A stretch of DNA of 64,000 nucleotides, from positions 186,001 through 250,000 of the IMG/VR virus record IMGVR_UViG_3300032236_001850; one strand, written 5' to 3'. This document shows, piece after piece, positions 30,254 to 49,980 of this stretch (the first letter of the stretch is position 1; every line of letters starts with the position of its first letter). The translations under genes were made by a program, and so were the position numbers. The notes under the pieces are model-generated. The model made no database searches and was not told the DNA's origin. It was given only the letters and a program-made list of their open reading frames with translations.

Positions 30254-30256
30254 CTA

Positions 30257-31062: not shown

Positions 31063-31125
31063 CTCAATTGGTAGAGCTCCTGCCTTCCAAGCAGGGGGTT
31101 GCCGGATCGTACCCGGTCTTCCGCT
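31053..31125 (+). tRNA. tRNA-Gly(TCC)
   Basis: Cloverleaf; T loop ATCGTAC; overlaps the endonuclease stop codon. Confidence 0.9.
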
Positions 31126-31139
31126 CAAAAATTAAACAG

Positions 31140-31427: not shown

Positions 31428-31494
31428 AAATATAATAGAACAAATGAAAGCAATCACAGACAGCTCGTAGACCATAATTGTTAGATAAGCAATT

Positions 31495-31728: not shown

Positions 31729-31770
31729 CAGTGATTGTTTTCATAGGTTCAATTTAAAAACCTATGAATT

Positions 31771-31844
31771 GGCGGGGTAGCTCAGATGGTAGTAGCGTTG
31801 GAGTCATAACCCAAAGGTCAGCGGTTCGATCCCGCTCCCCGCTA
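31771..31844 (+). tRNA. tRNA-Met(CAT)
   Basis: Cloverleaf; loop GTCATAA. Confidence 0.88.
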
Positions 31845-31852
31845 CAAAATTT

Positions 31853-31925
31853 GGGGCTGTAGCTCAACTGGCTGAGCGCCTCCCTTGCACGGAGGAGGAT
31901 GTGGGTTCGAATCCCATCAGCTCCA
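31853..31925 (+). tRNA. tRNA-Ala(TGC)
   Basis: Cloverleaf; G3:U70. Confidence 0.95.
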
Positions 31926-31988
31926 CAAAATATTTTTAATAATGAAAAAGAAATTCGACATGTATTAGGTAAAATAACCTAATACAAC

Positions 31989-32219
31989 ATGAAAACAAAA
32001 AAGAGATGGTCTTGGACCGAAGCACAAAGAAGACGCCACACAAAAGGCAGATATCATTATTGGAATAACGTTCCTGCTGACTTCGTTAGACAATTTAACA
32101 AAGCAAACAGAACAAAAGAAAAAGTATCAATGCATGAATTCATCAGAGGTGGAGATCTAGATTTCATAGATTTCACACCAAAGTATTCTAAGAGATGCGC
32201 AGGGTGGATTTATTTTTAA
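31989..32219 (+). CDS. basic hypothetical protein
   Basis: ORF inside tRNA array. Confidence 0.65.
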   Translation: MKTKKRWSWTEAQRRRHTKGRYHYWNNVPADFVRQFNKANRTKEKVSMHEFIRGGDLDFIDFTPKYSKRCAGWIYF

Positions 32220-32229
32220 AATAAGAAAG

Positions 32230-32799
32230 ATGGCAAGAAAAAAAGAAGAAACAGGTTTAAAATTTTATGAGATATCACAAAACAATAGTGGAGGTTCGTT
32301 TATAACGAATGACAAACTATGTCACAGATTATTCATAGAAGCAAACAGCTCAAGCGAAGCAGATTCTATCGCTGAAGATCTTGGATGTTATTGGAACGGT
32401 GTTGATGAAGATATGGACTGTCCGTGTTGCGGAGATCGTTGGTACGGTTCACATTCTGTTGATATAACTTCTATGACAAAAGAAAAAGACAGCAGATATC
32501 CGGTTGAAAGATGGGTTAATGCAAAAGGTCTTAGTGCTGAAGATGAATTGAAAGTATTGCTTGAGCGATATTCAGGAATGGAATGGATTGAAGCTCCATC
32601 GATAAATGAAAAATACGGATCTCGAATAATTGAGGGATCTATTAAACTTAATAGCATAGAAGATTATGTACAGGTAGTTGCTGATCAGTATGGTTGGACC
32701 TATCCGGATGCTAGAATATTCTACTATGACGGAAGGGTAAAAGAGATATTCTCGTCCAATGTGGAAGCACCCAAGAAAAAGAAAAATAAAATAGTCTGA
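32230..32799 (+). CDS. conserved phage protein
   Basis: QNNSGG and DCPCCGDRW. Confidence 0.75.
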   Translation: MARKKEETGLKFYEISQNNSGGSFITNDKLCHRLFIEANSSSEADSIAEDLGCYWNGVDEDMDCPCCGDRWYGSHSVDITSMTKEKDSRYPVERWVNAKGLSAEDELKVLLERYSGMEWIEAPSINEKYGSRIIEGSIKLNSIEDYVQVVADQYGWTYPDARIFYYDGRVKEIFSSNVEAPKKKKNKIV

Positions 32800-32816
32800 T
32801 AGAGATATCAGCAACT

Positions 32817-32891
32817 GGTTCATTAACTCAGTTGGTTCAGAGTGCAACTCCTACAAAGTTGAAGTCATAGGTTCGAATCCTATATGAACTA
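32817..32891 (+). tRNA. tRNA-Val(TAC)
   Basis: Cloverleaf; loop CCTACAA (C33). Confidence 0.85.
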
Positions 32892-32942
32892 CAAGCACAC
32901 AGAAAAGAGAAGGTTCGAAGATATATAGAATAAAAATTAAAA

Positions 32943-33623
32943 ATGTATATTTGCGAAAAATGTAATTCCAATCACAATGGCGAATATGGCTCGGGAAGAT
33001 TTTGTTCACCGAAGTGCAGCAGATCATATAGCACATCATTAAATAGAATATCAATTAATGAAAAAATAGGCAAAGCTATAAAAGGGTCGGGTAATCCACC
33101 ATCCATAAAAAATTGCATATATTGTGGAAATGAATTCATAGCTTCGTGGAAAAGAAAAGATCAAAAAAGCTGTTCAATGTCTTGTTCTATGAAATCCAAT
33201 TGGGAGAATCCTGAATATAAAAAAAATATTACGGAAAAAAATAAAGCAAGATGCATTGATATAAACGAGAGGAACCGGATGAGGGATATTGGTAGAAAGG
33301 GGGGATTTGGGAAAAAAGGTACAACAGAGGGTGGTACCAGATATGATTCAAATCTAGAAAAAATTTGTTTTGAATATCTTGAATCAAAAAATATCAAATT
33401 CGAAGCTCATAAAAATATACCTAATTCATCTAAGATTAGCGATGTATATTTAATAGACCAGAATATCTGGATCGAATTGGATGGAATAAACAGAGAAAAA
33501 AGAAAAGACTGGCTAGGAAAGGATTACGAATACTGGTTAGAAAAAATAATCATATACAAAAGAGAATCCTTAGATATGCGAATAGCATACAATTTGGGTG
33601 ATTTAATTAGGATAATAGAATGA
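32943..33623 (+). CDS. free-standing PD-(D/E)XK endonuclease
   Basis: N-terminus paralogous to 30361; S.LE, SD.Y, WIELDG. Confidence 0.8.
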   Translation: MYICEKCNSNHNGEYGSGRFCSPKCSRSYSTSLNRISINEKIGKAIKGSGNPPSIKNCIYCGNEFIASWKRKDQKSCSMSCSMKSNWENPEYKKNITEKNKARCIDINERNRMRDIGRKGGFGKKGTTEGGTRYDSNLEKICFEYLESKNIKFEAHKNIPNSSKISDVYLIDQNIWIELDGINREKRKDWLGKDYEYWLEKIIIYKRESLDMRIAYNLGDLIRIIE

Positions 33624-33815
33624 GATCCAATTAGTTCGAAAGAGCAAAAAAGGAGGAATAAGATGAACAGACGAAAGTCATCACCAAAGGGTAGAAAATA
33701 GATGTTATTCTGAGTATGGAGCGACGGCTCTAGGAAGGTTCGATTCCTTCACATCACATTTCAAGAGTATGGATAAATGGTGTTAGTAGCGGTCTAAAGT
33801 CTGAATTGGATCTCA
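33621..33815 (+). ncRNA. unidentified ~195-nt structured RNA with T-arm-like hairpin
   Basis: 12-bp closing stem TGAGATCCAATT/AATTGGATCTCA; GAAA tetraloops; GAAGG-TTCGATT-CCTTC. Confidence 0.6.
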
Positions 33816-33905
33816 ATAGGAAATGAAGCTCACAAAGCCCCTCATTTGTAGATCAATTTCGAGCATTTTTGAGCTTAAAGTTGGGTCCACTGTGAGCTTC
33901 AAATT

Positions 33906-33995
33906 GATCGGGTAATATAATGGCAGTATAGGTCGGGGGTCTTACGTGAGTAAGTGGCCTCTGGTCGTGCACAGGTTCGACTCCTGTTCTGATCA
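33906..33995 (+). ncRNA. tRNA-like RNA with extended, GNRA-capped anticodon arm
   Basis: Acceptor, D and T arms present; anticodon loop replaced by TTAC-GTGA-GTAA. Confidence 0.7.
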
Positions 33996-34016
33996 CTAAT
34001 TTTTAAACATTTCGAA

Positions 34017-34406
34017 ATGGACAAGGAAAGATTGGAATCATTAGCTAATAGATTATTGGAGATTCCTGCAAAGGTTGTAGAAGCGCAGTTGGAGTTATTG
34101 ACATTAACTGAAACTTCACAATCCCAATCAGAGAGGATCACTCAGATTGAATCTGTAATTAAAACAGAAATAAGTGCTGCTGTTGACGGAGCTGGTAAAA
34201 AAGCTTATAGCAACGCAGAAGCAAGAGATGCTGCTTTTATTGAAAAGACTACAGATAATTACGAATTATCCGTTGCTAAAACAGATCTTGCTAAAACACA
34301 AAGATCTGTACAGGAGAAAAGAATCAAAATAGAAGCTCTCGGAAACGAACAAAGAAATATAAGAGCAGTTCTTTATTTCATAGGAGGCGGAGAAGGAGCA
34401 ATCTAA
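34017..34406 (+). CDS. coiled-coil hypothetical protein
   Basis: Heptad pattern; YSNAEARDA. Confidence 0.75.
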   Translation: MDKERLESLANRLLEIPAKVVEAQLELLTLTETSQSQSERITQIESVIKTEISAAVDGAGKKAYSNAEARDAAFIEKTTDNYELSVAKTDLAKTQRSVQEKRIKIEALGNEQRNIRAVLYFIGGGEGAI

Positions 34407-34469
34407 GAATTTGTCACCAAGGGTCGGCCCATTGGGGGTGATTAAGAAATACCCATAAACCCCGGCCAC

Positions 34470-34538
34470 GGGATAAAAGCACAAGCGGATGTGCAATCGC
34501 TAAACAGCGAGAGGCAGGGTTCGAGTCCCAATATTCCA
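34470..34538 (+). pseudogene. tRNA-like RNA with collapsed anticodon loop
   Basis: D arm GCAC/GTGC; TCGCT-AAAC-AGCGA; T loop TTCGAGT. Confidence 0.55.
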
Positions 34539-34553
34539 CTAAAAATTGAAAAC

Positions 34554-35027
34554 ATGACACTAAAGGATAAAATCAATGCTGATTATATTACAGCATTCAA
34601 GGCAAAAGACACTGTAGCAAAAAGTGCATTAAGTGGTTTAAAGTCAAAAATTCTAGAAGCTGAGAAATCTGGACCTGCTGGTACAGAGCTTAGTGATGCA
34701 GATGTTTTAAAGATTGTCATAAGCACAATTAAACAAAGAAAACAATCGGTTGAGGAATTTACAAAGGCAGGTAGAATGGATCTTGTTGAACAGGAAACAT
34801 TAGAGCTAGCACCAATTGAAGCTTATCTTCCTAAACAAATGGACGATTCTGAAATCACTTCAGCAGTGAAGGAACTTATAGCTGAGTTTGATGGAGCAAA
34901 CCTTAATATACAAGCTCTTACAGGTAAAGTTATTGGTGCTTTCAATAAAAAGTTTCCAGGTATGGCAAGTCCAGTTAAAGTGAAAGAAATTATTACAGAA
35001 AATATTGTTGAAAAAATTATAAATTAA
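34554..35027 (+). CDS. yqeY: GatB/YqeY domain protein
   Basis: LKDKI..D...A.KAKD, IKQRK.S.E.F.KAGR.DL...E..E...IE.YLPKQM. Confidence 0.9.
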   Translation: MTLKDKINADYITAFKAKDTVAKSALSGLKSKILEAEKSGPAGTELSDADVLKIVISTIKQRKQSVEEFTKAGRMDLVEQETLELAPIEAYLPKQMDDSEITSAVKELIAEFDGANLNIQALTGKVIGAFNKKFPGMASPVKVKEIITENIVEKIIN

Positions 35028-35086
35028 TTTTTTTATTCCGAAAGGATGCCATATATTTGCATCATAATAATTAAACACATTTAAAA

Positions 35087-35260
35087 ATGGCAACAACCCA
35101 AAGAAGATCTAGACAAGCAAGAGCATTGTCTATGTTGGAGGCACAATTGAAAAGCGGTGTTAAAACCGAAAAAGGTACAAGAGATACCAAAATTGCATTA
35201 ACAGACTCTGACGTCAAGAGATTGAATAAAGAGATCGCTATATTGCAATCTAGGTTATAA
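35087..35260 (+). CDS. small basic protein (not in ORF track)
   Basis: 57-aa ORF directly after a TATATTTG promoter. Confidence 0.65.
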   Translation: MATTQRRSRQARALSMLEAQLKSGVKTEKGTRDTKIALTDSDVKRLNKEIAILQSRL

Positions 35261-35264
35261 TAAG

Positions 35265-35431
35265 TTAATTCTCTGTGTGTCCGTAGAGGCGAATTTCCAA
35301 AGTGTAACCTAATACGTGAGAAAGGAAGGCGGTATCTAAGTGCTGATTAGCTGCAACTGAGTCTATAGGGCGATTCAGCGAAAGGGGAAACACATTTATT
35401 GCTACTTGTAGATGGAGGCACGGAGAATTAA
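35265..35431 (+). ncRNA. unidentified ~165-nt structured RNA
   Basis: Closing stem TTAATTCTCTGTGT/GCACGGAGAATTAA with G-U pairs; internal CTGAGTC/GATTCAG. Confidence 0.6.
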
Positions 35432-35435
35432 ATAA

Positions 35436-35509
35436 GGTCCCGTAGTTCAGCGGAAGAATTCCAGAATACGGATCTGGAGACGGGGGTTCGAATCCCTCCG
35501 GGATCTCCA
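35436..35509 (+). tRNA. tRNA-Arg(ACG)
   Basis: Cloverleaf; encoded CCA. Confidence 0.9.
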
Positions 35510-35516
35510 AAAAATA

Positions 35517-35590
35517 CGGTAGGTAGCTCAGTTGGTTAGAGCGTCTCGCTGATACCGAGAAGGCCGGAGGTTCAAGTCCTCCTCTACCGA
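35517..35590 (+). tRNA. tRNA-Ile(GAT)
   Basis: Cloverleaf; loop CTGATAC. Confidence 0.92.
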
Positions 35591-35594
35591 CAAA

Positions 35595-35759
35595 AACGTT
35601 CTTAGAAATATTGGTTAGTGGTAAATTGAAAGGTTACTTCGTTTTTTAGCCCAGTTGGTAGGGCGTAAATTTTTGGTATTTAAGGTCGTGGGTTCAACTC
35701 CCACAAAAACTATTAGCTCCCTTTCTAAATATTCCCTTCCCAATATCTCTAAGCACGTT
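35595..35759 (+). ncRNA. Y-RNA-like unit 1 (colinear tRNA module, TTG loop)
   Basis: AGTGGT..GTTACTTCG..ATTCCCT scaffold enclosing D, anticodon and T arms; near TROVE gene. Confidence 0.75.
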
Positions 35760-35849
35760 AAATTTTAAAAAAATATTGATTTTTTTATGAAACAAAGAGG
35801 ATTTCCTCACATATAAAGATCACAAAACGTTCATTGAAAAGATAATTTA

Positions 35850-35984
35850 TTGTAAGTGGTAACGGAATATGAGTTACTTCGTTTTTTAGCTCATTTGGTA
35901 GAGCAAGAGTCTCTTAAACTTTAGGTAGCTGGTTCAACTCCGGCAAAAACATCCATTGAAACTCACCCGGACATTCCCTTACAA
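35850..35984 (+). ncRNA. Y-RNA-like unit 2 (colinear tRNA module, CTT loop)
   Basis: Same scaffold; TTGTAAG/CTTACAA terminal stem. Confidence 0.8.
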
Positions 35985-35990
35985 AACATA

Positions 35991-36149
35991 TTATAAGTGG
36001 TCAGTAAAATAGTTACTTCGCATGCATTGAAAGCACGGTGTCGGTGGTTCGAATCCATCTTCCCCCACTAAACAAATTAAAAATTTGGGGGAATAGCTCA
36101 GTTGGTAGAGCACGTTAGAAAAAACGCTATTTACATCATTCCCTTATAA
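35991..36149 (+). ncRNA. Y-RNA-like unit 3 (circularly permuted, YrlA-like)
   Basis: T arm, then loop-closed acceptor TTCCCCC/GGGGGAA, then D arm. Confidence 0.8.
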
Positions 36150-36156
36150 AGCATAC

Positions 36157-36300
36157 GACAGTAGTAAGTATAGAAGTTACATCGCACATCGGTTCGACTC
36201 CGATAGTTTCCGCCAAAACTGGAAATTTAGACAAGTGGTTAAGTCATCTGACAGTAAATCAGACATTAAATTGTTCACACTTCTTACATCATTCTCTGTT
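36157..36300 (+). ncRNA. Y-RNA-like unit 4 (permuted, retains anticodon arm with GTA)
   Basis: T arm, AGTTTCC-GCCA/GGAAATT, D arm, TCTGA-CAGTAAA-TCAGA. Confidence 0.75.
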
Positions 36301-36308
36301 AGTTTTAT

Positions 36309-36346
36309 AAAGGGATTAGGACGCCAAGCGACTTAATCCCTTTTTT
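36309..36346 (+). terminator. intrinsic terminator after the Y-RNA array
   Basis: GGGATTAGG/CTTAATCCC plus T run. Confidence 0.75.
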
Positions 36347-36393
36347 ATTAGAGTAAATTTAAAAGTAAAATATAAAAACAAAAATTAGAAATT

Positions 36394-37317
36394 ATGAAAA
36401 GAAATTCATTAGCATCAAAAGGATTATCAATGTCTCAAGCTCAATCTGTATCAAATCTTTGCAACCAAAGATCTAAAGATATTACTGCAGCTTTAGCAGA
36501 CATCAACAACGCATCAAAAACGATAAGAATCTCCAAGGAGGATCATCAGTTAACTGCTGCAAAACCTTTGCCTGAGAATGTTGTTGAACTTCTTAAGAAT
36601 AAGGCAAGGTTGCATGCAACACAGGCTTTCCTAATGGAGAACATAAAAGCCAAGGACGAATTAATAAACTCGATCAAAAGAGAATATTTTGATTACGAGG
36701 ATCAAAATCCAGCTCCCACAAGAGAGCCTAATGTTCAACCTGAAGTTCTTGTTCAAGTTGGTGAGGATTGGGGTTGGGAACAACTCTCAATGGACGAGTA
36801 TAATGAATTCATTGAGGCTGAGGCTTATGCTTCACACATAGGTCAATTTATTCATAAAGGTGGAACATTAGATCGTCTGAGAGCTGAGCTACCAAAAATC
36901 CAGCTTCTTGAGTTCATGGAGGTTGAGATTGGAAAGAAAACTCCCGTTAAAGTCAACGTGCACCACAAGTCTGAGGAGCTGTTAAAAACTCATGAGGAGT
37001 TGGCAGCTCTTCATAGAGGTTACGAACAAAGAGTTAACTACTTCAAATCTAAGGTTAAGAATGCTGTAACCAAGGAGAACGCAAGGATTTCTAAAATTAA
37101 TGCTGACGCACAGGCAGAAGCTAACGAAAAGAATGCTCTTGTGATGAACGAGTATTCAAAAAAGAAAGAAACCTGGTTAGCAGATTACAAGAAAGCAAGT
37201 CTTGATTTTGAGACTGAGCGTCAAAATAGAATCAGCGAAGCTGTAAATCTTAAGATCCAGGTGGATGCTAGATTCCAACCAGTTGTTGATGAATTTTTGA
37301 AACAACTAGAAAAATAA
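36394..37317 (+). CDS. coiled-coil protein of unknown function
   Basis: 307 aa, helical; lies between the Y-like RNAs and the large ncRNA. Confidence 0.85.
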   Translation: MKRNSLASKGLSMSQAQSVSNLCNQRSKDITAALADINNASKTIRISKEDHQLTAAKPLPENVVELLKNKARLHATQAFLMENIKAKDELINSIKREYFDYEDQNPAPTREPNVQPEVLVQVGEDWGWEQLSMDEYNEFIEAEAYASHIGQFIHKGGTLDRLRAELPKIQLLEFMEVEIGKKTPVKVNVHHKSEELLKTHEELAALHRGYEQRVNYFKSKVKNAVTKENARISKINADAQAEANEKNALVMNEYSKKKETWLADYKKASLDFETERQNRISEAVNLKIQVDARFQPVVDEFLKQLEK

Positions 37318-37321
37318 AAAT

Positions 37322-37701
37322 AAATTGAGGTGCTGAAGGGGTAAGCACAAGCCGATTCCCCCGATGCTTTGATTCGGAGAGATAAGGTCCTTTAATTAAT
37401 GGCGTCAAGCCATTATCTTATAAGATAAATGACTATTAATCATATACAGCAATCAGAGGTTCCTTCGGGAGCCTCTATAACTCCGCTTCTTCTATAAAAT
37501 TAAACAAAACTGAGATAGAACTCAATTGTTAGACAAGTTACTGAAAGCCATAGAGAAAGAGAAATCTTTACCACTAGGCAGATAATTGGCTAACTACAGA
37601 GACTTAGTTTTTGTCCTTGCCTTTGCGATAGAGGAAGGTCTTTGACATTGATCTTGCATTTGACGTGGTCTATATGCTTTATCTTTCCGATAACTCAATT
37701 T
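37322..37701 (+). ncRNA. ~380-nt multi-branched structured RNA
   Basis: Nested long-range helices with G-U pairs; cUUCGg hairpin; no ORF of 60 aa or more. Confidence 0.7.
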
Positions 37702-37731
37702 TAAAATATTAACGAATAAACAATTATAATC

Positions 37732-39312
37732 ATGTCACGTTACAACCAAAAAGTAAAAAGAACTGTAGAGACAGTTACAAACCACCAAGGTGGTACAGGT
37801 GTGAAGTATGATCCAAAATTGGAATTAATTGCGATTCTTACTACTGGATTAGACAATTCATACTATGAAAAATTATCGGATAGAGAGAACAGATTTGTTC
37901 AACTTATTGACGAATTATCTAAGAAAGATATCGAATTCGTCGCGAAAGCGCTCGTATACGCGAGAACTGTTGTTGGTCAAAGATCAGTAACACACTTCGG
38001 TTCGGTGTCATTAGTTAAGCATTTATCAGGTTCTGCTATAGGTAGAAGATTCTTCTCTAAAAGAGATAAGAATGCTAAAACCGGAGGTATTGTATACCGT
38101 TTAGATGACGTATTAGAGATCATCGCAGCTTACCAACACTTCAATCCAGGTAAACCATTACCTAACTCGATGAAGAAAGGTTTCAAAGCAGCTTTGGAAT
38201 CAGCTGATGCGTACGAATTAGCTAAATATCAAGGTAAAGGTAAAGCAGTTTCGCTTGTAGATGTTGTTAACTTGGTTCGTCCAAAACCAACAACACCACA
38301 AATGGAAGGTGTTTTCAAAGATCTTATGACTGGTAAATTAAAACAGTTCAACACGGTTGAGGATAAAAACTCAAAAGCTGGACAAGATGTTGCTGCAAAA
38401 GTTAAATCTGGAGAAATCACTAAAGCACAAGCTGAGATTGAATTGACACAGTCTAAAGAAAGCAACTATGCTGAATTGATTAAAACAAGAAAAATTGGTT
38501 ACTTGGCATTGCTTCGTAACTTAAGAAACATCATCAACACGAGTTCAAACTCTGAATTGGTTAGCGGTGCATGTGAACTTTTAATCGATGAAAAATTGAT
38601 CAGAAAATCTTTGGTTTTCCCTCACCAAATCGATATTGCTTTGGAGATTCTTTTACAAGAAACTAGTGCTTCTGCATCCAGACCATTCGTTACAGCTTTA
38701 AATAAAGCCTACGAATTAGCAATACCAAACTTGGTTGAATTGTTCTCACACGGTAGAACAGCGGTTGTTATAGATACATCTGGATCTATGCACGGAATGG
38801 GTCACGGTGTTAAAATGAATGGTAAAGCTATCAATAAACACTGTATCGATAAGGCTGCTCTTATTGGAGCAACTTTAGCAAAAGGTATTGGTGCTGATTT
38901 ATATCAATTTGCAACAACAACTGAGAGTATTAGATACAACCCAGGTGATAGTATAAACACTATCAAAAACACATGTTTAAGCTTACAAGGTAGAGTTGGA
39001 CACGGTACGGACTTCGGTTCAATCTTCTCAACTTTACAGTCAAGTGGTAAATATGATCGTATCTTTATCATATCGGATTTACAAGGAGGTGATAGAATCG
39101 TTACAAACAGTTCTTTCCAATCCTATAAATCTAAGCATGGTGAACCGTTCATCTACACGGTAGATATTCAAGGATATGGTACAACCATGTTCAAACCAGG
39201 TAACAAATTAGTTCAACTTTTTGGTTACTCTGCTGATATCTACGAGATGATCAAAAAAGCTGAGATTGATCCAAAAGCAATTTTGAGAGAAATTGAAGCT
39301 ATCGTGATCTAA
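37732..39312 (+). CDS. Ro60/TROVE domain RNA-binding protein with vWA domain
   Basis: LAKYQG....VSL.DV..LV.PKP, ALLRNLRNI, DTSGSM MIDAS, GTD, IISD.Q. Confidence 0.93.
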   Translation: MSRYNQKVKRTVETVTNHQGGTGVKYDPKLELIAILTTGLDNSYYEKLSDRENRFVQLIDELSKKDIEFVAKALVYARTVVGQRSVTHFGSVSLVKHLSGSAIGRRFFSKRDKNAKTGGIVYRLDDVLEIIAAYQHFNPGKPLPNSMKKGFKAALESADAYELAKYQGKGKAVSLVDVVNLVRPKPTTPQMEGVFKDLMTGKLKQFNTVEDKNSKAGQDVAAKVKSGEITKAQAEIELTQSKESNYAELIKTRKIGYLALLRNLRNIINTSSNSELVSGACELLIDEKLIRKSLVFPHQIDIALEILLQETSASASRPFVTALNKAYELAIPNLVELFSHGRTAVVIDTSGSMHGMGHGVKMNGKAINKHCIDKAALIGATLAKGIGADLYQFATTTESIRYNPGDSINTIKNTCLSLQGRVGHGTDFGSIFSTLQSSGKYDRIFIISDLQGGDRIVTNSSFQSYKSKHGEPFIYTVDIQGYGTTMFKPGNKLVQLFGYSADIYEMIKKAEIDPKAILREIEAIVI

Positions 39313-39405
39313 TAAATCACCGTAAACAAAAAAGCCATTCGAAAGAATGGCTTTTTTTATTGTTATGGGAAATGATATATACAATAAAAAAATCAAATCA
39401 GTAAT

Positions 39406-39759
39406 ATGATACATCTATATGAATTCGAAAAATTCAATGAAAGTTTAAACATTGAAAATTACTGTCAAACATATCTTAAAGATTCGGGGTTTGATCATAG
39501 AATACTAAATAAAAATATTTTCATAACTCGTGGGGAAGGTAAACCTAAATTTACTTACGATGAAATTAAAAAACATCTTAGACCACTAGTTACATTTTTG
39601 GATAGAGATATGGGTGTAAAGGAAATAATTCTTAAGGAGAGTCCATCCAATAGAACCAGCAGAACAACAAGACACAGATGCACGGTTAAGGAATTCATGG
39701 GTGATACTAACACTGCAGCGAAATGCGAGCATTTAAGAGAAGTTGAAATAATTTTGTAA
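39406..39759 (+). CDS. putative virion protein
   Basis: MIHLYEFEKFNES; GATATATA upstream. Confidence 0.7.
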   Translation: MIHLYEFEKFNESLNIENYCQTYLKDSGFDHRILNKNIFITRGEGKPKFTYDEIKKHLRPLVTFLDRDMGVKEIILKESPSNRTSRTTRHRCTVKEFMGDTNTAAKCEHLREVEIIL

Positions 39760-39855
39760 TTTTTTCAAAAATATTTTTTTTATTCGAAACATTTCCTTAA
39801 ATTTGCATAAAATATTAAAATCAATTAGATATATAAATCTATAAAAATAAAAATC

Positions 39856-39948
39856 ATGTCACAAATACAGTACATATTAGATACATTACATTTAGATCAC
39901 ACAAGTTCAACTTGTGAATCGTCTATTGTGATGAGGAGAGAGTATTGA
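39856..39948 (+). CDS. leader peptide 2 (30 aa; not in ORF track)
   Basis: MSQIQYILDTLHLDHTSSTCESSIVMRREY between promoter and terminator. Confidence 0.75.
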   Translation: MSQIQYILDTLHLDHTSSTCESSIVMRREY

Positions 39949-40004
39949 TATTAAGTAACGTAATAAATATCAAAAAGGTCTCCTCGAAAAAGGAGGCCTT
40001 TTTT
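39933..40004 (+). terminator. attenuator 2: terminator 39972-40004 with antiterminator strand 39933-39939
   Basis: AGGTCTCCT/AGGAGGCCT plus T run; GAGGAGA is complementary to TCTCCTC. Confidence 0.78.
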
Positions 40005-40035
40005 ATTGTTCATTGAAATATTGTAAAAGTAAATT

Positions 40036-40123
40036 GGAGAGGTGCGCAAGTGGTCAAAAGCGCCTAGACTTGAAATCTAGTGTGAGCTAATTACTCCCGT
40101 GGGTTCGAATCCCACTCTCTCCG
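40036..40123 (+). tRNA. tRNA-Ser(TGA)
   Basis: Cloverleaf with long variable arm. Confidence 0.93.
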
Positions 40124-40237
40124 CTTAGGTTACCCTTCTTGTTCCGTATGGGGTTATAAAGACGAATCAGTCAACGGAGCCCATGATGGTACCTATACCG
40201 AAGAAAATAGGAAAGATTCTATATGTCAGCCCTCAAT

Positions 40238-40323
40238 GGAGAGGAATCCTAAACGGTGATAGGTCATGCCTGGAAAGCATCGGGTGCGGGCAACTGCATG
40301 GAGTTCGATCCTCCTTCTCTCCT
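40238..40323 (+). tRNA. tRNA-Ser(GGA)
   Basis: Cloverleaf with long variable arm. Confidence 0.82.
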
Positions 40324-40331
40324 CAAAAAAT

Positions 40332-40404
40332 GCCTAAGTAGCTCAGTTGGTAGAGCAGCTGATTTGTAATCAGCAGGTCGCAGGTTCGACCCCTGTCTTA
40401 GGCT
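40332..40404 (+). tRNA. tRNA-Thr(TGT)
   Basis: Cloverleaf. Confidence 0.95.
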
Positions 40405-40412
40405 CTAATTCC

Positions 40413-40495
40413 GGTGCCTTGCCTGAGTGGCTGAAAGGGGCGGTCTGCAAAACCGCTAGAGAAATCTCACGTCAGTTCGAATCTGACAGGCACCT
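40413..40495 (+). tRNA. tRNA-Cys(GCA) with long variable arm
   Basis: Loop CTGCAAA; U73; GAGA-AA-TCTC extra arm. Confidence 0.88.
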
Positions 40496-40514
40496 CTAAT
40501 AAAAATTAGTAATC

Positions 40515-40961
40515 ATGGAACAAGACAAAAAACAGAAAATCGAACAGATCAGAAAGTTCCTTGAGGAAAAAAGGGAAATTGATCGAAGAAATTTTGAGGA
40601 ACTTAGAAGAAAAAGATGGGACAATCTTAAACCCTTCAAAACACCTCAAGATGTACCGGAAATACCAAGAGTCGGAGAAAAGGAATATAAAGAATATTAT
40701 ATACCAAGACTCATCGAAGCTGGAGCAATTCCAAAAACAGAACTTGAAGATGGAGCATTCTATCTTGGAGATCACAGAAGAGCAAAAATTGGTAAATGGA
40801 ACGACGCTATGAATGTCTTCGAGTATTGGAGATTTAAAATGGGAAATTATTTCATGGATAAATGCAATCACTTCGAAGACGATGATGGATTCGCTTTATT
40901 TACACCAATTAAAAAAGTAACAGAAGAAGAATTTAATAAGACAGGAAAAAATGAAAATTAA
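40515..40961 (+). CDS. hypothetical phage protein
   Basis: L.DG..Y.G..RRA....W, H.EDDDG..LF.P. Confidence 0.75.
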   Translation: MEQDKKQKIEQIRKFLEEKREIDRRNFEELRRKRWDNLKPFKTPQDVPEIPRVGEKEYKEYYIPRLIEAGAIPKTELEDGAFYLGDHRRAKIGKWNDAMNVFEYWRFKMGNYFMDKCNHFEDDDGFALFTPIKKVTEEEFNKTGKNEN

Positions 40962-41229
40962 ATTAAGAAATGTGATGCTTGGTCTAAAGGATCAACTTCC
41001 ATTAAAAAGAGCATTTCGAAATTTTTTCATAACAGGTAACGCTTTAGGTTTATTCGATAAAAGAAGCCATTATAGAATGGACGGCAAGGAGAAACAAGGA
41101 TTTCCAACAAAGGAATCGGGTAGAAAAGCAGCAGACGCAATGCAAAGAAAACATGGTAAATATTTTAGTGTTTATAAATGCATCTTCTGTGATGGTTATC
41201 ATCTAGGAAAAAATAGAGACAATAAATAG
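40951..41229 (+). CDS. hypothetical protein with CxxC..H motif
   Basis: YKCIFCDGYHLG. Confidence 0.75.
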   Translation: MKIKLRNVMLGLKDQLPLKRAFRNFFITGNALGLFDKRSHYRMDGKEKQGFPTKESGRKAADAMQRKHGKYFSVYKCIFCDGYHLGKNRDNK

Positions 41230-41284
41230 CATCTCCCTAGGGAGAAGGCACTGGCTGACGATCTGGCCTTATAGATCGTAACAT

Positions 41285-41358
41285 GGTGGACGTAGCTCAA
41301 TCGGTAGAGCGCTGGTTTGTGGTACCAGAGGTAGCGGGATCGTAACCCGTCGTTCACC
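41285..41358 (+). tRNA. tRNA-His(GTG)
   Basis: Cloverleaf; G-1:C73. Confidence 0.92.
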
Positions 41359-41370
41359 CAATTTATAAAT

Positions 41371-41688
41371 ATGAGAAAATTATTGATTGCACTATTTCTA
41401 TTTACGTCAATCTCATATGCACAGATGACAACATCAAGCATATCAGGCAGCATAGAAATAGACGGAGTTCCAGCTGGAAAGGTAAAGCTTATAATAAAGC
41501 ATCTACCTACAAATTACGCAACGGAAGCAGAAACAAATAACAGAGGTGACTTCAGTATAGAGGATCTCGACGTTGGTGGTCCTTACGGATTAACAATAAC
41601 AATAAACGGAATCATATATTATAGAAAATATGAATATCTAAATCTTGGCGAAAATGATGTTAAGAAAATAGAGATATTCACAAAATAA
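41371..41688 (+). CDS. exported carboxypeptidase-regulatory-like domain protein
   Basis: AQ.TTSSISG, H.PT, TN..G.F....L.VGGPY, as in N-termini of Bacteroidota TonB-dependent receptors. Confidence 0.75.
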   Translation: MRKLLIALFLFTSISYAQMTTSSISGSIEIDGVPAGKVKLIIKHLPTNYATEAETNNRGDFSIEDLDVGGPYGLTITINGIIYYRKYEYLNLGENDVKKIEIFTK

Positions 41689-41691
41689 CAA

Positions 41692-41778
41692 GCCCCGATG
41701 GCGAAACAGGTTAGACGCCCCAGATTTAAACTCTGGTGTTCCGAAAGGAGCGTGCCGGTTCGACTCCGGCTCGGGGTA
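41692..41778 (+). tRNA. tRNA-Leu(TAA)
   Basis: Cloverleaf with long variable arm. Confidence 0.92.
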
Positions 41779-41833
41779 CAACAATTTCCAGAACGCCTCT
41801 GCTCAGCATGCGCAATTTTCTGGGCTTGTATTC

Positions 41834-41919
41834 GGAGATGTAAGCATAGTGGTACTGCAGCGGTTTGCTAAACCGTTCGGCGTTCATTCGCCGCGGAGGT
41901 TCGAATCCTCTCATCTCCG
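41834..41919 (+). tRNA. tRNA-Ser(GCT)
   Basis: Cloverleaf with long variable arm. Confidence 0.9.
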
Positions 41920-41927
41920 CTAATATT

Positions 41928-42001
41928 CGGAGCAAGGTCCACTGGCGAAGGATGCCGCCCTGTCACGGCGTGCGAACCGGGTTCGAATCCCGGTGTTCCG
42001 G
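41928..42001 (+). tRNA. tRNA-Asp(GTC)
   Basis: Cloverleaf. Confidence 0.88.
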
Positions 42002-42133
42002 CAGGGGTGACAAAAAATTATTTTTGAAAATTTTCAAAAAAATATCAAAAATAATTTTTTTATCCCGAAAGAATATCATACTTTTGCAATACAATAATAA
42101 ACAAAGAAACAACGTTCATTAACATAAAGAATT

Positions 42134-42290
42134 AAAAGAAATATTTTTGGAGAAGATCAAGTCTATTGGTTGCCATACCCTGACGCAATAGACCGTTCTA
42201 ATATCAGAAATGAGATTAGACCAGCACAGTCACGCAAGACTGGTAAACCAAAGAGTAAAGGGATGTGAAAGTGGTTTGGATATTTCTTTT
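42134..42290 (+). ncRNA. unidentified multi-hairpin RNA
   Basis: AAAAGAAATATTT/GGATATTTCTTTT closing stem with four internal hairpins. Confidence 0.6.
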
Positions 42291-42298
42291 TTTATAAC

Positions 42299-42373
42299 GG
42301 TCTCTTAGCTCAGTTGGTTAGTAGCACCTGACTCATAATCAGGGGGTCGCTGGTTCGAGCCCAGCAGGGACCA
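42299..42373 (+). tRNA. tRNA-Ile2(CAT), probably lysidine-modified
   Basis: CAT anticodon on an Ile2-like body. Confidence 0.8.
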
Positions 42374-42374
42374 C

Positions 42375-42519
42375 TAGGAAATAATGGTTTCCGCTGAAGA
42401 CAAGGTGTCGACGCCCTCTTCAGCTCTACAGGATTCACACACCCTCTGCCGGTGCACTGTAAAACTATTACTAAGCAGCAAAGATTGGAGCGATATTGGT
42501 ACTCCATCATTATTTCCTA
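42375..42519 (+). ncRNA. unidentified multi-branched RNA
   Basis: TAGGAAATAATGG/TCATTATTTCCTA; GCTGAAGA/TCTTCAGC; TACAG/CTGTA; TGGAG/CTCCA. Confidence 0.6.
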
Positions 42520-42524
42520 AATTT

Positions 42525-42596
42525 GCTCCCATCGTCTATCGGTTAGGACGTCAGGTTTTCATCCTGGAAAGTCGGGTTCGACTCCCGGTGGGAGTA
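42525..42596 (+). tRNA. tRNA-Glu(TTC)
   Basis: Cloverleaf. Confidence 0.93.
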
Positions 42597-42687
42597 CAAA
42601 AAATTGAGAGAGTGGAGAAATCCCTGCAAGTTTCAAATTAGCATGCGATGAAATTAAATTGCAATGAAGCATATCAGTTTTAAAGTA

Positions 42688-42814
42688 TAAATAAGTGGTA
42701 ATTAAGAGAGTTACTTCGTAGATCATTTGGTTAGATCAATTGTTTCACTCACAATGGGTAGCTGGTTCGAGTCCAGTCGGATATTAAATACTTTCTTTAG
42801 TATTCCCTTATTTA
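42688..42814 (+). ncRNA. Y-RNA-like unit 5 (D, anticodon and T arms, no acceptor stem; CAC loop)
   Basis: AAGTGGT..GTTACTTCG..ATTCCCTT scaffold as in units 1-4. Confidence 0.75.
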
Positions 42815-42817
42815 AAC

Positions 42818-42891
42818 GGTATCGCAGCATATTGGTGTATGGCGCCACCCTGTCACGGTGGAGATTGCGGGTTCGAGCCCCGTCGATACCG
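42818..42891 (+). tRNA. tRNA-Asp(GTC)
   Basis: Cloverleaf. Confidence 0.9.
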
Positions 42892-42906
42892 CTAAAAAAT
42901 ATAAAT

Positions 42907-42985
42907 CGCGAAATGGTGGAAGATGGCCTATCCCGCCGGGCTCATATCCCGGAGATCCCAAGTTCGAATCTTGGTTTCGCTACCA
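42907..42985 (+). tRNA. initiator tRNA-fMet(CAT)
   Basis: C1:U72 mismatch; three G-C pairs in the anticodon stem; encoded CCA. Confidence 0.88.
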
Positions 42986-43060
42986 AAAAACCCAATATTT
43001 GTTCAAATATTGGGTTTTTAATTTTTATGCGGATATATACTTTAAATCTAATATATATTT

Positions 43061-43609
43061 ATGAAAATCCCAAATAGACACTCCGCAGGTGGAGTTGCAA
43101 CCGCAATAAAATTCAGAGCTGAGGCTTTAATAAGATATTATAAAGATCCAGTTCTATGCAAATGTTGCAATATCATAATAGATGTAAAAGATAGTGAGAA
43201 AGTTTCATCGGTAAGACAAAGAGTATTCTGTAGTAAAAATTGTTCAGCTATTTATAACAATACCAGAAGAGAGAAAAAGAAAGTCCAAATTAAGGAATTG
43301 AGGGATCTGGAAAGAGCTGAGTCATCAATAAATAATTTAACAAAAATAGAATTATTAAATAGATGCAAAACATATGCTAGTTACAGATCATCGATTTGCA
43401 AGAATGCAAGAAAATCATTTTCGATATCAGAAAAGGAAAGGAAATGCTTAATATGCGGCTATGATAAGCACACTGATATAGCACATATAAAATCAGTATC
43501 ATCTTTTCCTGATGATGCAAAAATATCAGAAATAAACAGTTCAGAAAATTTAATGGCTCTGTGTCCTAACCATCACTGGGAATTTGATTCTGGACTTATA
43601 AAGTTATAA
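43061..43609 (+). CDS. HNH endonuclease
   Basis: CLICGY....IAHIK...N...NL..LCPNHHWEFD. Confidence 0.88.
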   Translation: MKIPNRHSAGGVATAIKFRAEALIRYYKDPVLCKCCNIIIDVKDSEKVSSVRQRVFCSKNCSAIYNNTRREKKKVQIKELRDLERAESSINNLTKIELLNRCKTYASYRSSICKNARKSFSISEKERKCLICGYDKHTDIAHIKSVSSFPDDAKISEINSSENLMALCPNHHWEFDSGLIKL

Positions 43610-43734
43610 TTCCAGAGCTTCGCTACTATCAGCCATGGCATCCTTGATGTCATGGCTTTTTTGTTTATTGTCCAAATAGCAATATCTTTTTCGAATATAT
43701 AGTTTGTCGTATTCAATTATAAACAAACGGATAA

Positions 43735-44541
43735 ATGCAAAAGATATTAAACTTTAAAGGATTCATAAACGAGGAAGCATCACAAAGTGAAGCCCATCTT
43801 CTATTCAATGGCAACACATTAGATTTCATTGAAAATGGTAGCGTTGTAAAATCCTGGAAAGCTTGTTCAGGCAGAACATATTATCAATGGTACGTTAAAC
43901 CAGAATCTTGGAAAAAAAGATACACCATGTCACCAGTGGAATGGTCCAAAGTAAAATCAGAAGGACCGATACCACAAGGTAAATACAAACTTGGGCCGAC
44001 GGAAGAAAGGGATCTCAATGCCAGATGGAGAAATGATGAAAATTTTGTAAAGCTAACACTTGCCAAGCAAACGGTTCTTCTTCTACCTGACAATGACGTC
44101 ACATTAAGCACAGATGATTTTAAGGAGATAACAGATCCGTCCAGAATAGCGTGGGGTAATTTTAGATTTGCAATAATACCACAGAAAGGAACAAACACAT
44201 TCGGCAGAGGTGGATTCTTTCTCCATGGAGGAAGTTTACCAGGATCGATTGGTTGTATAGATCTTGTTACTGGAATAAGGGAATTTGGCCAATTTTATAA
44301 AGATTGGTTACAAAAAACAGGTAACACCACAATTGATCTTATAGTTGATTATAGTACATTCGACAGAAATGAAACCATAGACGTGGATTCCCAACCGTAT
44401 AAGATGGATTATGATCCTCTTGGTTCAGATCCAGGATATGATAAGTGGTATAAAGAAAGTGATGCACAAATTCAAGATGTGTTATCTGCTAATAAAATCA
44501 GAATGGATTATAAGAAAGTTCTTGCTGCAAGAAGAAATTAA
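43735..44541 (+). CDS. Tlde1/DUF2778-like L,D-transpeptidase-fold protein
   Basis: GPIPQG.Y, GR.GF.LHGG...GS.GCI. Confidence 0.8.
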   Translation: MQKILNFKGFINEEASQSEAHLLFNGNTLDFIENGSVVKSWKACSGRTYYQWYVKPESWKKRYTMSPVEWSKVKSEGPIPQGKYKLGPTEERDLNARWRNDENFVKLTLAKQTVLLLPDNDVTLSTDDFKEITDPSRIAWGNFRFAIIPQKGTNTFGRGGFFLHGGSLPGSIGCIDLVTGIREFGQFYKDWLQKTGNTTIDLIVDYSTFDRNETIDVDSQPYKMDYDPLGSDPGYDKWYKESDAQIQDVLSANKIRMDYKKVLAARRN

Positions 44542-45233: not shown

Positions 45234-46253
45234 ATGGCATTTAGAGTACAGATAAGAAGAGATCCATCAGGTAAATGGATAGTAAATAATCCCATTTTAT
45301 TAAGTGGTGAGTTTGGTTATGAAACTGACACCTCTTACATGAAAATAGGAGATGGTGCTACCCCGTGGAATTATCTTCCTTATTGGAACACCGGCCAGGG
45401 AGTCACTGGTCCAAGTGCTTCATTATATTCTTTACCCTCTCCCGCTATAAGTCTAGTTAGAATTCCTGTAAATGGAGCAACTGGAGCAACTTCTTGTTAT
45501 CTAGATAGTAGAATGACAGGTGGAGTAACAGGTGACAAATTTGTTCTGACTAATGGGCCTTCCGTATCCACAACAAATTTAACAACCGAACAAATAGATG
45601 CTGGTGTTTGGATTGAAATGGTTTATTATAGAACTGCTAGGGGAAAACAGAACAGCTCAGGTAAATATTTAAGAGACAAGGGGTTTAAAATATTAACACC
45701 ACAAATTAACGGGGTAAACACATTAACTAATGATATTATAAATCTTTACCCTGAACAAACACATAAATTTAATACAAGGGGAGGTATACATACTGAAATT
45801 CACATGAATGTTTACAATCATTTCAAGGTGACACAGCCTAATACAAGTATTGATATGACACCATATTTTAATGGTCTTTTTAGTTATAAGGATATAGGTT
45901 TCAGAGGTCAAAATCCGGAAAGAAATAACAATGAAGGATTATTAAACTGTCTTGTTCCAGCAATGAGATTTATGTCAAGTACCGATTATGGGAGAAGATT
46001 CTGCTACGACACCAATTATAGACCTCTTTATGTTAAATTTAGATATATAATGTGGGATCCAAAAGCAAATTCAAATAGAGGTGGATTCATAACTGGACCA
46101 TTATCAGAAACAGTAAAAATAGCATCACCAGTACCTCCCTTTTTAATTGATTTTAATAGAAGCTACACAACACAAAGTGCCTGCGGAATAATAAATCCAA
46201 ATTATAAACCGGAAGTTCTAAGATGCTGGATAGAATCAAATATACCATTATAG
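45234..46253 (+). CDS. fibre-like protein, paralog
   Basis: Same N-terminal domain as 44589. Confidence 0.75.
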   Translation: MAFRVQIRRDPSGKWIVNNPILLSGEFGYETDTSYMKIGDGATPWNYLPYWNTGQGVTGPSASLYSLPSPAISLVRIPVNGATGATSCYLDSRMTGGVTGDKFVLTNGPSVSTTNLTTEQIDAGVWIEMVYYRTARGKQNSSGKYLRDKGFKILTPQINGVNTLTNDIINLYPEQTHKFNTRGGIHTEIHMNVYNHFKVTQPNTSIDMTPYFNGLFSYKDIGFRGQNPERNNNEGLLNCLVPAMRFMSSTDYGRRFCYDTNYRPLYVKFRYIMWDPKANSNRGGFITGPLSETVKIASPVPPFLIDFNRSYTTQSACGIINPNYKPEVLRCWIESNIPL

Positions 46254-47883: not shown

Positions 47884-49980
47884 ATGAGAAGAGGAGACGA
47901 CTACAAAAAGAAAATCTCACCATCGATGGACCAATACACTGGTGGTGACGAAGAAGATTACCAAAGCGATTACAAATCCAAAAAAGGAACTGGTAAAACG
48001 CCAGTTCTCGATTCACACTCCACAGATCTAACAGATCTTGCTTCTAGAGGTGAACTTGATCCCATTATAGGAAGGGATCCAGAGATAGAAAGAATTTCAC
48101 AAATCCTTTCCAGAAGAAAAAAGAACAACCCAGTACTTATCGGTGAACCAGGAGTTGGTAAATCTGCAATAGCAGAAGGACTTGCTTTAAAGATAGTTCA
48201 AAGAAAAGTTTCACAAACCTTGTTAAACAAAAGAATTCTGACATTGGATATGGGTTCTCTTGTGGCAGGAACCAAGTATAGAGGCCAATTCGAGGAAAGA
48301 ATTAAATCCATTATAGATGAGCTTAAAAAGAATCGTGATATCATTATATTCATCGACGAGCTACACACTATAATTGGAGCAGGTGGATCTTCGGGATCAC
48401 TTGATGCTTCCAATATGTTTAAGCCAGCATTAGCTAGAGGTGAAATTCAATGCATCGGAGCAACAACTCTGAATGAATATCGTCAACATATCGAGAAGGA
48501 CGGTGCACTGGAAAGAAGATTTCAAAAGGTTCTTGTAAATCCACCGGATATGGAAACCACTATAGATATTCTAAATAGTGTAAAATCCAAATATGAGGAT
48601 CATCACAACGTCAAATACACGGACGATGCCATAATCAACTGCGTAAAGCTCACAGAACGCTATATAACGGATCGAAACTTCCCGGACAAGGCTTTAGATG
48701 CCTTAGACGAAGCGGGCAGTAGAACGCAGCTAAGCGATGTTAAAGTGCCTGACACAATAACCAGATTGGAAAAGAATCTGTCACAGATCGCAATCGACAA
48801 ACAACTTGCAGTAAAAAGACAAGATTACGAGGGAGCAGCAAAATTCAGGGATCTACAAAGACACACAGAGGTTTCATTGGAATCAGAAATTAAACTCTGG
48901 GAGGCAAAGCTTAAGGGCAAAAAGAAAACAGTAGACGGTGAGAAGGTAGCTGAGGTTGTTGCTATGATGTCAGGAGTTCCTCTTAAGAAAGTTAACCAAG
49001 ACGAAAATTACAAGTTGGCTAATATGAGCTCTGAGCTTAAAGGTAAAGTGATTGGACAGGATCATGTTATAGAGAAAGTATCTAGAGCTGTTTTAAGAAA
49101 CCGAATGGGTATAAAAGATCCAAATAAACCAATTGGAACTTTTCTATTTCTTGGTCCTACCGGGGTAGGTAAAACTCAGTTGGCTAAGGAACTTGCTAAA
49201 TATATGTTTGGTGAGAGTGATTCCTTGATAAGAATCGACATGAGTGAATATGGCGAAAAGTTTGACGCAACAAAAATGTTTGGAGCACCTCCGGGATATG
49301 TTGGTCACGAAGATGGTGGACAACTCACAGAAAAAGTGAGAAGAAAACCATACTCGATTGTTCTATTCGACGAGATCGAAAAAGCACATCCTGAGATTTT
49401 CAATACACTTCTACAAATCCTGGACGAAGGTCATTTAACAGATGGACAAGGAAGAAAAATAAATTTCAAAAACACTCTAATCATTCTAACTTCGAATGTG
49501 GGTCAGAGAAAATTATCAGAGTTTGGGTCGAGTAGTGGATTTGCAATCTCAGCAAAAGCTAACAATAAGGAATTCGAAAACGAAGCTCTTCTTAAGAAGG
49601 AGTTGGAAAAGAAATTTTCACCAGAATTCATTAACAGACTAGACGATATTGTTTATTTCAAAGAATTAGCTAAAGAAAACATGTTGGATATTCTTGATGT
49701 TGAATTAAATAAAACATTACCAAGAATAGAATCACTAGGTTACAAAATCAAAATATCAGCAGATCTAAAAGAAAAGATATGTGATGAAGGATTCAATCCA
49801 AAATTTGGAGCAAGACCTTTAAAAAGAGTGGTTCAAAAATATATCGAGGACACCTTAGCGGATCTTATGGTACAAACCAAAGTAACGGAAGGAGACACAA
49901 TAACTCTTTCCTTCGATAAAGCAAAGGATGGAGGTATCCAACCACCAATAAAAGTCAAGGTAACAAAACCAAAAAAATAG
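47884..49980 (+). CDS. clpC: ClpC-type AAA+ ATPase lacking the N-terminal Clp domain
   Basis: GEPGVGKS, FIDELH, UVR-like middle domain, GPTGVGKT, FDEIEKAH, GARPL. Confidence 0.92.
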   Translation: MRRGDDYKKKISPSMDQYTGGDEEDYQSDYKSKKGTGKTPVLDSHSTDLTDLASRGELDPIIGRDPEIERISQILSRRKKNNPVLIGEPGVGKSAIAEGLALKIVQRKVSQTLLNKRILTLDMGSLVAGTKYRGQFEERIKSIIDELKKNRDIIIFIDELHTIIGAGGSSGSLDASNMFKPALARGEIQCIGATTLNEYRQHIEKDGALERRFQKVLVNPPDMETTIDILNSVKSKYEDHHNVKYTDDAIINCVKLTERYITDRNFPDKALDALDEAGSRTQLSDVKVPDTITRLEKNLSQIAIDKQLAVKRQDYEGAAKFRDLQRHTEVSLESEIKLWEAKLKGKKKTVDGEKVAEVVAMMSGVPLKKVNQDENYKLANMSSELKGKVIGQDHVIEKVSRAVLRNRMGIKDPNKPIGTFLFLGPTGVGKTQLAKELAKYMFGESDSLIRIDMSEYGEKFDATKMFGAPPGYVGHEDGGQLTEKVRRKPYSIVLFDEIEKAHPEIFNTLLQILDEGHLTDGQGRKINFKNTLIILTSNVGQRKLSEFGSSSGFAISAKANNKEFENEALLKKELEKKFSPEFINRLDDIVYFKELAKENMLDILDVELNKTLPRIESLGYKIKISADLKEKICDEGFNPKFGARPLKRVVQKYIEDTLADLMVQTKVTEGDTITLSFDKAKDGGIQPPIKVKVTKPKK

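Follow-up and report, generated by a model that had tools for sequence, protein, structure and literature searches.

Leader-peptide attenuators of enterobacterial biosynthetic operons couple translation of a short upstream open reading frame to transcription of the genes that follow, with the position of the ribosome deciding whether an intrinsic terminator or a mutually exclusive antiterminator forms. The trpL, hisL and pheL leaders each sense a single amino acid, whereas the leaders of other operons carry regulatory codons for more than one, as in ilvL of ilvGMEDA (Leu, Ile and Val) and thrL (Thr and Ile), and the pheM leader of pheST controls an aminoacyl-tRNA synthetase operon, a component of the translation machinery rather than a biosynthetic pathway. 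T-box riboswitches also couple terminator read-through to the state of specific tRNAs, but bind uncharged tRNA directly through a specifier codon and need no translation. Why phages carry tRNA genes has been debated for decades, the main proposals being codon compensation, replacement of degraded host tRNAs, and evasion of anticodon nucleases (e.g. PMC10264068), and this literature gives a reason why a phage would want its tRNA supply to respond to tRNA shortage. However, it discusses the content and anticodon-loop sequences of phage tRNAs, and none of the papers we found – including a genome-wide attenuator survey – describes leader-peptide attenuation of tRNA genes in phages or cells, although absence from the literature searched is not proof of absence.

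Here, we describe a locus in a 64-kb stretch of DNA (hereafter, the window) corresponding to about positions 186001-250000 of the 434.5-kb contig IMGVR_UViG_3300032236_001850. The window is therefore part of a very large phage genome and carries 31 tRNA calls and 16 copies, against 2.3 expected, of a promoter motif ending in the Bacteroidota -7 box TAnnTTTG. One exact copy (TCGAAA-N-TAAATTTGCA) lies at 39784-39807 (+), with its -7 box TAAATTTG at 39798-39805, 50 nt upstream of the ATG of a 30-codon ORF (leader 2; 39856-39948, +) that ends in TGA and encodes MSQIQYILDTLHLDHTSSTCESSIVMRREY; the transcript would start about 45-50 nt before this ATG. A strong intrinsic terminator follows at 39972-40005 (+), in which a 13-bp stem with a 6-nt loop (AAAAAGGTCTCCTC-GAAAAA-GGAGGCCTTTTT; 39972-40003) precedes a T tract, and the first tRNA gene of an 11-13 gene array begins 31 nt after it, with no other gene between. 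We considered whether recoding could alter the ORF, but all three stops are used in the window's long ORFs, no suppressor tRNA is present, and reading through the TGA would add only two codons before a TAA.

The downstream array (array 2; 40036-42985, +) contains Ser-TGA (40036-40124), a Ser-GGA-like tRNA (40238-40324), Thr-TGT (40332-40405), Cys-GCA (40413-40496), His-GTG (41286-41359), Leu-TAA (41692-41779), Ser-GCT (41834-41920), Asp-GTC (41928-42002), an Ile2-type CAT tRNA (42299-42374), Glu-TTC (42525-42597), a weak tRNA (42715-42781), a second Asp-GTC (42818-42892) and an initiator-like CAT tRNA (42907-42985), together with three small interspersed protein ORFs without matches to amino-acid biosynthesis, transport or synthetase families, and is closed by a terminator at 42986-43019 (+). 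The Ser-GGA tRNA is found in the window only with relaxed ARAGORN and scores 35 bits on Rfam tRNA-Sec, below threshold, although its orthologue at the same offset is called by standard ARAGORN in relatives and the anticodon loop is invariant. The CAT tRNA at 42299 is assigned as Ile2-type because its best E. coli match – 83% over the full length, with shared acceptor stem and T arm – is annotated tRNA-Ile and has a CAT anticodon, whereas the CAT tRNA at 42907 has a 1:72 mismatch and a GGG/CCC anticodon stem, like an initiator. An internal promoter-like motif with two mismatches (42065-42088, +) lies ahead of the Ile2, Glu, Asp and initiator tRNAs, and no leader ORF or terminator was found between it and the upstream part of the array.

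The original prediction was that codons 7-23 of leader 2 all correspond to tRNA types of this array, and that the leader RNA can form an antiterminator of two helices; the codons, coordinates and helices it gave are all correct. With the tRNA assignments above, every codon of this 17-codon run (39874-39924, +) is readable by an array-2 tRNA, with ATA requiring the Ile2-type tRNA and ACT requiring extended wobble, and every tRNA type of the array is sampled at least once. Under the window's own codon usage the probability of a match is 0.39 per codon, and a run of 17 or more in 29 codons occurred in 0 of 200,000 simulations (analytic estimate about 8e-7, or P about 1e-6). The run is unique in all six frames of the window, where the next longest is 10, and is thus not what genome-wide AT-rich codon usage would give.

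A second unit in the window provides a built-in control. An almost identical promoter (27625-27648, +) and 5′ UTR precede a 42-codon ORF (leader 1; 27699-27827, +; MKTTFRNIVKPFMPQSVAPFNQVGIAKWYNGYSKGSGGHNII) and a terminator (27864-27889), followed by array 1 (27919-35955, +), with Pro, Trp, Gln, Lys, Tyr, Asn, Phe, Asn, Gly, Met, Ala, Val, Arg-ACG, Ile-GAT, Gln and Lys-CTT tRNAs in that order. Both leaders cover every amino-acid type of their own array (13/13 for leader 1 and 9/9 for leader 2); leader 1 contains no Leu, Asp, Glu or Cys, and leader 2 contains none of Lys, Asn, Phe, Gly, Ala, Pro or Trp. Under superwobble, leader 1 matches array 1 at 33/41 codons and array 2 at 8/41, whereas leader 2 matches array 2 at 21/29 and array 1 at 7/29, a reciprocal specificity that general AT-rich usage cannot explain. 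However, AGA in leader 1 is not read by the Arg-ACG of array 1. Moreover, promoter-like motifs within the arrays (29340, 35038 and 42065) could express parts of them independently of the leaders, and a pre-array (Arg-TCT, Leu-TAG and Leu-AAG at 25060-25921) has a promoter but no leader. An ORF at 24749-24928, lipoprotein-like and followed by a terminator at 24950-24975, was rejected as a leader, as a separate promoter follows the terminator and its Asp/Thr-rich content does not match the next tRNAs.

The full leader 2 RNA folds far better than shuffled sequence (z = -4.7), and the fold contains the terminator. When the terminator's 3′ arm is left out of the fold, its 5′ arm (TCTCCTC, 39979-39985) pairs with GAGGAGA (39933-39939), which lies within codons 26-28 of the leader, 7-13 nt before the stop; this helix encloses a hairpin formed by TTGATATT (39945-39952) and AATATCAA (39966-39973), whose 5′ strand contains the stop codon (39946-39948). 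A ribosome at the last codons or at the stop would cover both elements, whereas one stalled with codon 22 or earlier in its A site would not, and the matching run ends at codon 23, where the leading edge of a stalled ribosome would begin to cover the antiterminator arm. In leader 1 the corresponding arm AGGGATCTGGAGG (27799-27811) pairs with the terminator's 5′ arm at -20.3 kcal/mol, and in the untranslated fold it is held by codons 4-6, like the trp 1:2 pairing. Leader 2 also contains a perfect 7-bp hairpin within the sensor (CACAAGT-TCA-ACTTGTG, 39900-39916), which appears in both folds and explains the choice of ACT, which pairs with AGT. It is kept in relatives, with A-U becoming G-U at the L006 and L009 loci, a changed loop at L001, and 6 bp retained at L039, and it may be a pause, 1:2 or anti-antiterminator element, although this role is inferred.

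A 23-nt piece of the shared UTR identified 15 loci in large viral contigs. The leader 2 peptide is identical in five near-identical relatives, which differ only by four kinds of synonymous A/G third-position change (TCA>TCG, ACA>ACG, GTG>GTA and CAG>CAA), each staying with the same tRNA, while the non-coding spacer after the stop varies much more. In the diverged homologue L039, whose neighbouring protein is 91% identical to that of the window, eight residues change at the two ends of the peptide, whereas the three changes inside the sensor (T>S, H>S and an added T) all stay within the array's amino-acid set. Covariation within the leader 2 lineage alone is thin, with three antiterminator pairs and two terminator pairs showing changes on both sides. 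A search with the UTR variant of leader 1′ found only leader 1′ copies, and no leader 2 equivalent was recovered for the 343-373 kb clade.

The gene between the arrays (37732-39312) encodes a TROVE/Ro60-like protein, and we used it to collect more distant phage loci from viral and metagenome collections. Many of these have tRNA arrays of different composition and order, each preceded by its own promoter, short ORF and terminator. For example, a leader containing VHMSSSSSHVSV precedes Ser, Ser, Val and His tRNAs; one containing FSFPFPQEW precedes Pro, Phe and Glu; one beginning MKRYTYITLLGTTDKKWADEGK precedes Trp, Glu, Asp, Ala, Lys, Arg, Gly, Thr, Leu and Tyr; one beginning MKNIMNISQSFSIMNPFSHNGININVQSP precedes Ser, Gln, Pro, Phe, Asn, Val, Ile, Ser and His; and one beginning MIRNYTYNFSQLPEQCEQLPLFYF precedes Cys, Gln, Phe, Leu, Pro, Tyr and Glu. 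Two leaders of 46-51 aa contain all 20 amino acids and precede single, nearly complete arrays (loci L020 and L021); random peptides of that length would contain all 20 with P of about 0.007 and 0.014. The unit is lineage-restricted, as more distant TROVE-linked arrays (L028, L033-L036) have promoters running straight into tRNAs. No cultured phage with the unit was found: a megablast of 36000-44000 against GenBank phages gave only short hits to single tRNAs, crAss001 – which also has a TROVE gene and a 23-gene tRNA array – has a promoter directly before tRNA-Gln with no leader, and the 634-kb LR745206 has no tRNAs within 20 kb of its TROVE gene.

To test the association formally, leader ORFs were defined without reference to array content, as the first ATG after a -7 box whose stop lies just before a terminator preceding a tRNA, and were clustered into 16 families. 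Whole peptides are enriched for the amino acids of their own array (Fisher combined P 7e-21), with a summed own-array z-score of 42.1 against a maximum of 29.9 in 200,000 permutations; the own array ranks first for 9 of 16 leaders and in the top two for 12. The result holds for 11 clearly unrelated families, and for nine families with the window excluded, where only the identity permutation reaches the observed value. The terminator's 5′ arm pairs best with the last codons of its own leader in 12 of 16 families, with a mean energy of about -12 against -6 kcal/mol and 0 of 100,000 permutations reaching the observed total; for leader 2 the own-arm duplex energy is -12.4 kcal/mol against -5.5 for the arms of other families, and both window leaders rank first. 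In-set residues make up 66% of the zone where a stalled ribosome leaves the arm free, against 49% of the tail (P = 4e-4). Two of the 16 units (L098 and L102 6994) show no signal in any test and are probably not leaders.

The amino-acid-level match is the strong signal, and the isoacceptor-level correspondence proposed in the original prediction is not significant for leader 2 alone (9 of 11 informative codons against 6.6 expected). It becomes significant only when families are pooled, with 103 of 156 codons that could have been non-cognate being strictly readable by the array's anticodons against 78 expected (P<1e-5), or 65/100 against 51 under superwobble (P = 0.0014), and even then about a third of informative codons are not strictly cognate. 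With this qualification, the inference that selection acts on the leader's codon content and not on its peptide product is supported by the reciprocal specificity of the two leaders, the co-variation of leader and array content across families, and the family-specific antiterminator arms.

The most economical reading is that leader 2 is a trp-type ribosome-mediated transcription attenuator controlling a phage tRNA array, to which we assign a probability of about 0.78 in the absence of experimental or transcriptomic evidence. Transcription would start at the promoter at about 39800, and a ribosome would translate the leader while RNA polymerase moves on. If every codon is decoded promptly, the ribosome would reach the last codons and the stop and cover GAGGAGA and the inner hairpin, so that the terminator forms and transcription ends before the tRNA genes; if it stalls anywhere in codons 7 to about 22 because the matching aminoacyl-tRNA is scarce, GAGGAGA stays free to pair with TCTCCTC and the polymerase reads into the array. 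Because the sensor contains at least one codon for every tRNA type of the array, it would act as an OR-gate in which shortage of any one of them induces the whole array, and abundant array tRNAs would shut it off again, giving product feedback; leader 1 would do the same for array 1. Translation of the ORF and stall-dependent read-through are inferred, and the trigger could be loss of host tRNAs during infection (for example through host anticodon nucleases or host shut-off) or simply high demand. Each codon type occurs only 1-4 times rather than in long tandem runs as in hisL or pheL, so sensitivity to a mild shortage could be low.

Other explanations appear unlikely, although the leader could be a translation-coupled attenuator that reports general translational capacity or amino-acid charging, with the codon mirror a by-product, for example of early phage genes being tuned to the phage's tRNAs. 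The structure alone does not say what causes stalling, and classical attenuators sense charging rather than tRNA abundance; however, the two leaders of one genome use nearly disjoint codon sets that follow the partition of tRNAs between the arrays, as is also seen in other phages with other partitions, and a general-capacity sensor has no need for array-specific content or full coverage of the array's tRNA types. It is less likely still that the ORFs encode real small proteins followed by ordinary, perhaps leaky, terminators, with the resemblance to the array due to chance or shared composition. The conservation of the leader 2 peptide in close relatives, with only synonymous changes, would also fit a selected peptide, but the uniqueness of the run, the permutation tests across 16, 11 and 9 families, the family-specific arms placed in the last codons, and the residues changed outside the sensor in L039 all count against it. 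Moreover, the leader families share no recognisable sequence similarity yet match their own arrays, and no terminator is needed here for an upstream gene, because a promoter lies between the gene at 39406-39759 and the leader. A role in trans for the terminated transcript or the peptide, as reported for rnTrpL and peTrpL (PMC6614838, PMC7298713), with control in cis being secondary, is similarly improbable: the terminated RNA of about 190 nt is strongly structured, but nothing here points to a target and a trans role would not explain why codon content follows the downstream array across families.

It is probable, though unproven, that these leaders represent a previously undescribed and apparently widespread class of phage regulatory element, in which multiplexed attenuators carry a codon 'barcode' mirroring the tRNA genes downstream and an array is controlled by the decoding activity of its own products. 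As far as our literature searches show, this would be the first case of tRNA genes governed by ribosome-mediated attenuation, and would place the mechanism in a self-referential feedback loop on non-coding genes in a phylum (Bacteroidota) where leader-peptide attenuation is poorly documented. If the leaders work as proposed, the phage itself would be reporting which shortage it responds to, turning the question of what phage tRNAs are for into a testable one, and the partition of tRNAs into separately sensed arrays would become meaningful. The design suggests a compact natural sensor of the supply of up to 20 tRNA species, and its signature – promoter, short ORF, antiterminator in the last codons, terminator, tRNA – can be used to annotate many short 'hypothetical proteins' in large phages.

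The unit is not a T-box, as no T-box hit was obtained at gathering thresholds or in a permissive search of 39700-43200, and a translatable ORF carries the specificity. It shares the logic of regions 1 to 4 with trpL, hisL and pheL but is not a sequence or covariance-model member of the Rfam leader families, with sub-threshold scores of 29.0 bits for Phe_leader (RF01859) and 24.2 bits for Thr_leader (RF00506) against gathering scores of 55; these and sub-threshold sRNA hits are caused by the terminator. The pheM leader differs in being chromosomal, in sensing one amino acid, and in having a protein-coding operon as its target. The ilvL and thrL leaders have similar anatomy, with a short ORF carrying codons for more than one amino acid and alternative terminator and antiterminator structures, but here the regulated genes are tRNAs and not enzymes, so that the product being sensed is the decoder itself. 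There are 8-13 amino-acid types per sensor (up to 20 in L020 and L021) instead of 2-3, the codons are mostly single rather than in tandem runs, and the element is phage-encoded and uses Bacteroidota-type promoters without a Shine-Dalgarno sequence.

Not all of the phage's tRNAs are under leader control, because a pre-array (Arg-TCT, Leu-TAG, Leu-AAG) at window positions 25011-25921 is driven by an exact copy of the promoter motif with no leader ORF or terminator. The stretch after tRNA-Arg (25134-25250) also looks tRNA-like. The tRNA-Ala called by ARAGORN on the minus strand at 24278-24356 is probably a false positive, as it lies inside a well-supported RNaseH-like ORF (24210-24662, Pfam E 1.5e-22) and has no Rfam tRNA hit.

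A repeated element of about 30 nt (AAGTGGTAA..GAGTTACTTCG) lies directly 5′ of several tRNAs and tRNA-like pieces, at about 35610-35640, 35850-35880, 35995-36025, 36160-36185, and 42690-42718, and could be a processing signal or a mobile or intron-related element. The region 35960-36230 contains tRNA-like fragments – a 5′ half, GGGGGAATAGCTCAGTTGGTAGAGCAC, at about 36088, and a T-arm with acceptor end and CCA at about 36190, separated by about 70 nt – and a similar piece lies at about 36025-36065. These may be interrupted or intron-containing tRNA genes that were missed by both tRNA finders.

Some related phage loci carry suppressor-type tRNAs with anticodons that match stop codons, including CTA (loci L026, L028, and L031), TTA (L019 and L103), and TCA (L096), which hints at stop-codon reassignment in some relatives, although the window itself uses all three stops and has no such tRNA. 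With relaxed thresholds ARAGORN also calls a tRNA-Asp-like fold inside the leader ORF of the MKNIMNISQSF.. family (9366-9439 in locus L022 and 15486-15559 in locus L024); this is probably spurious, but it recurs in both homologues.

Among the protein-coding genes, those at 45234-46253 and 47884-49980 encode one protein with an Mtd_N domain (major tropism determinant of diversity-generating retroelements) and another that is a ClpB/ClpA-like double AAA+ ATPase, the latter behind a further copy of the promoter motif (47835). Endonuclease-like genes (DUF559/Vsr-like, TnsA-like N-terminal domain, HNH) at 28027-28911, 30361-31062, and 43061-43609 are interspersed among or next to the tRNA genes, as expected for homing endonucleases, and the array of crAss001 also holds an HNH gene.

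A 526-aa TROVE/Ro60-like RNA-binding protein is encoded between the two tRNA arrays (37732-39312, plus strand). It keeps that position next to tRNA arrays across this phage group, and more distant homologues occur in crAss-like, Vibrio, Caulobacter, and Streptomyces phages. Two G+C-richer stretches without convincing ORFs (42100-42298 and 35265-35430) lie between a promoter-like motif (or a small gene) and the next tRNA, and could be structured non-coding RNAs, for example a Y-RNA-like partner for the TROVE protein. Cellular Ro60 proteins work with Y RNAs that have tRNA-like modules, so a partner RNA may be nearby.
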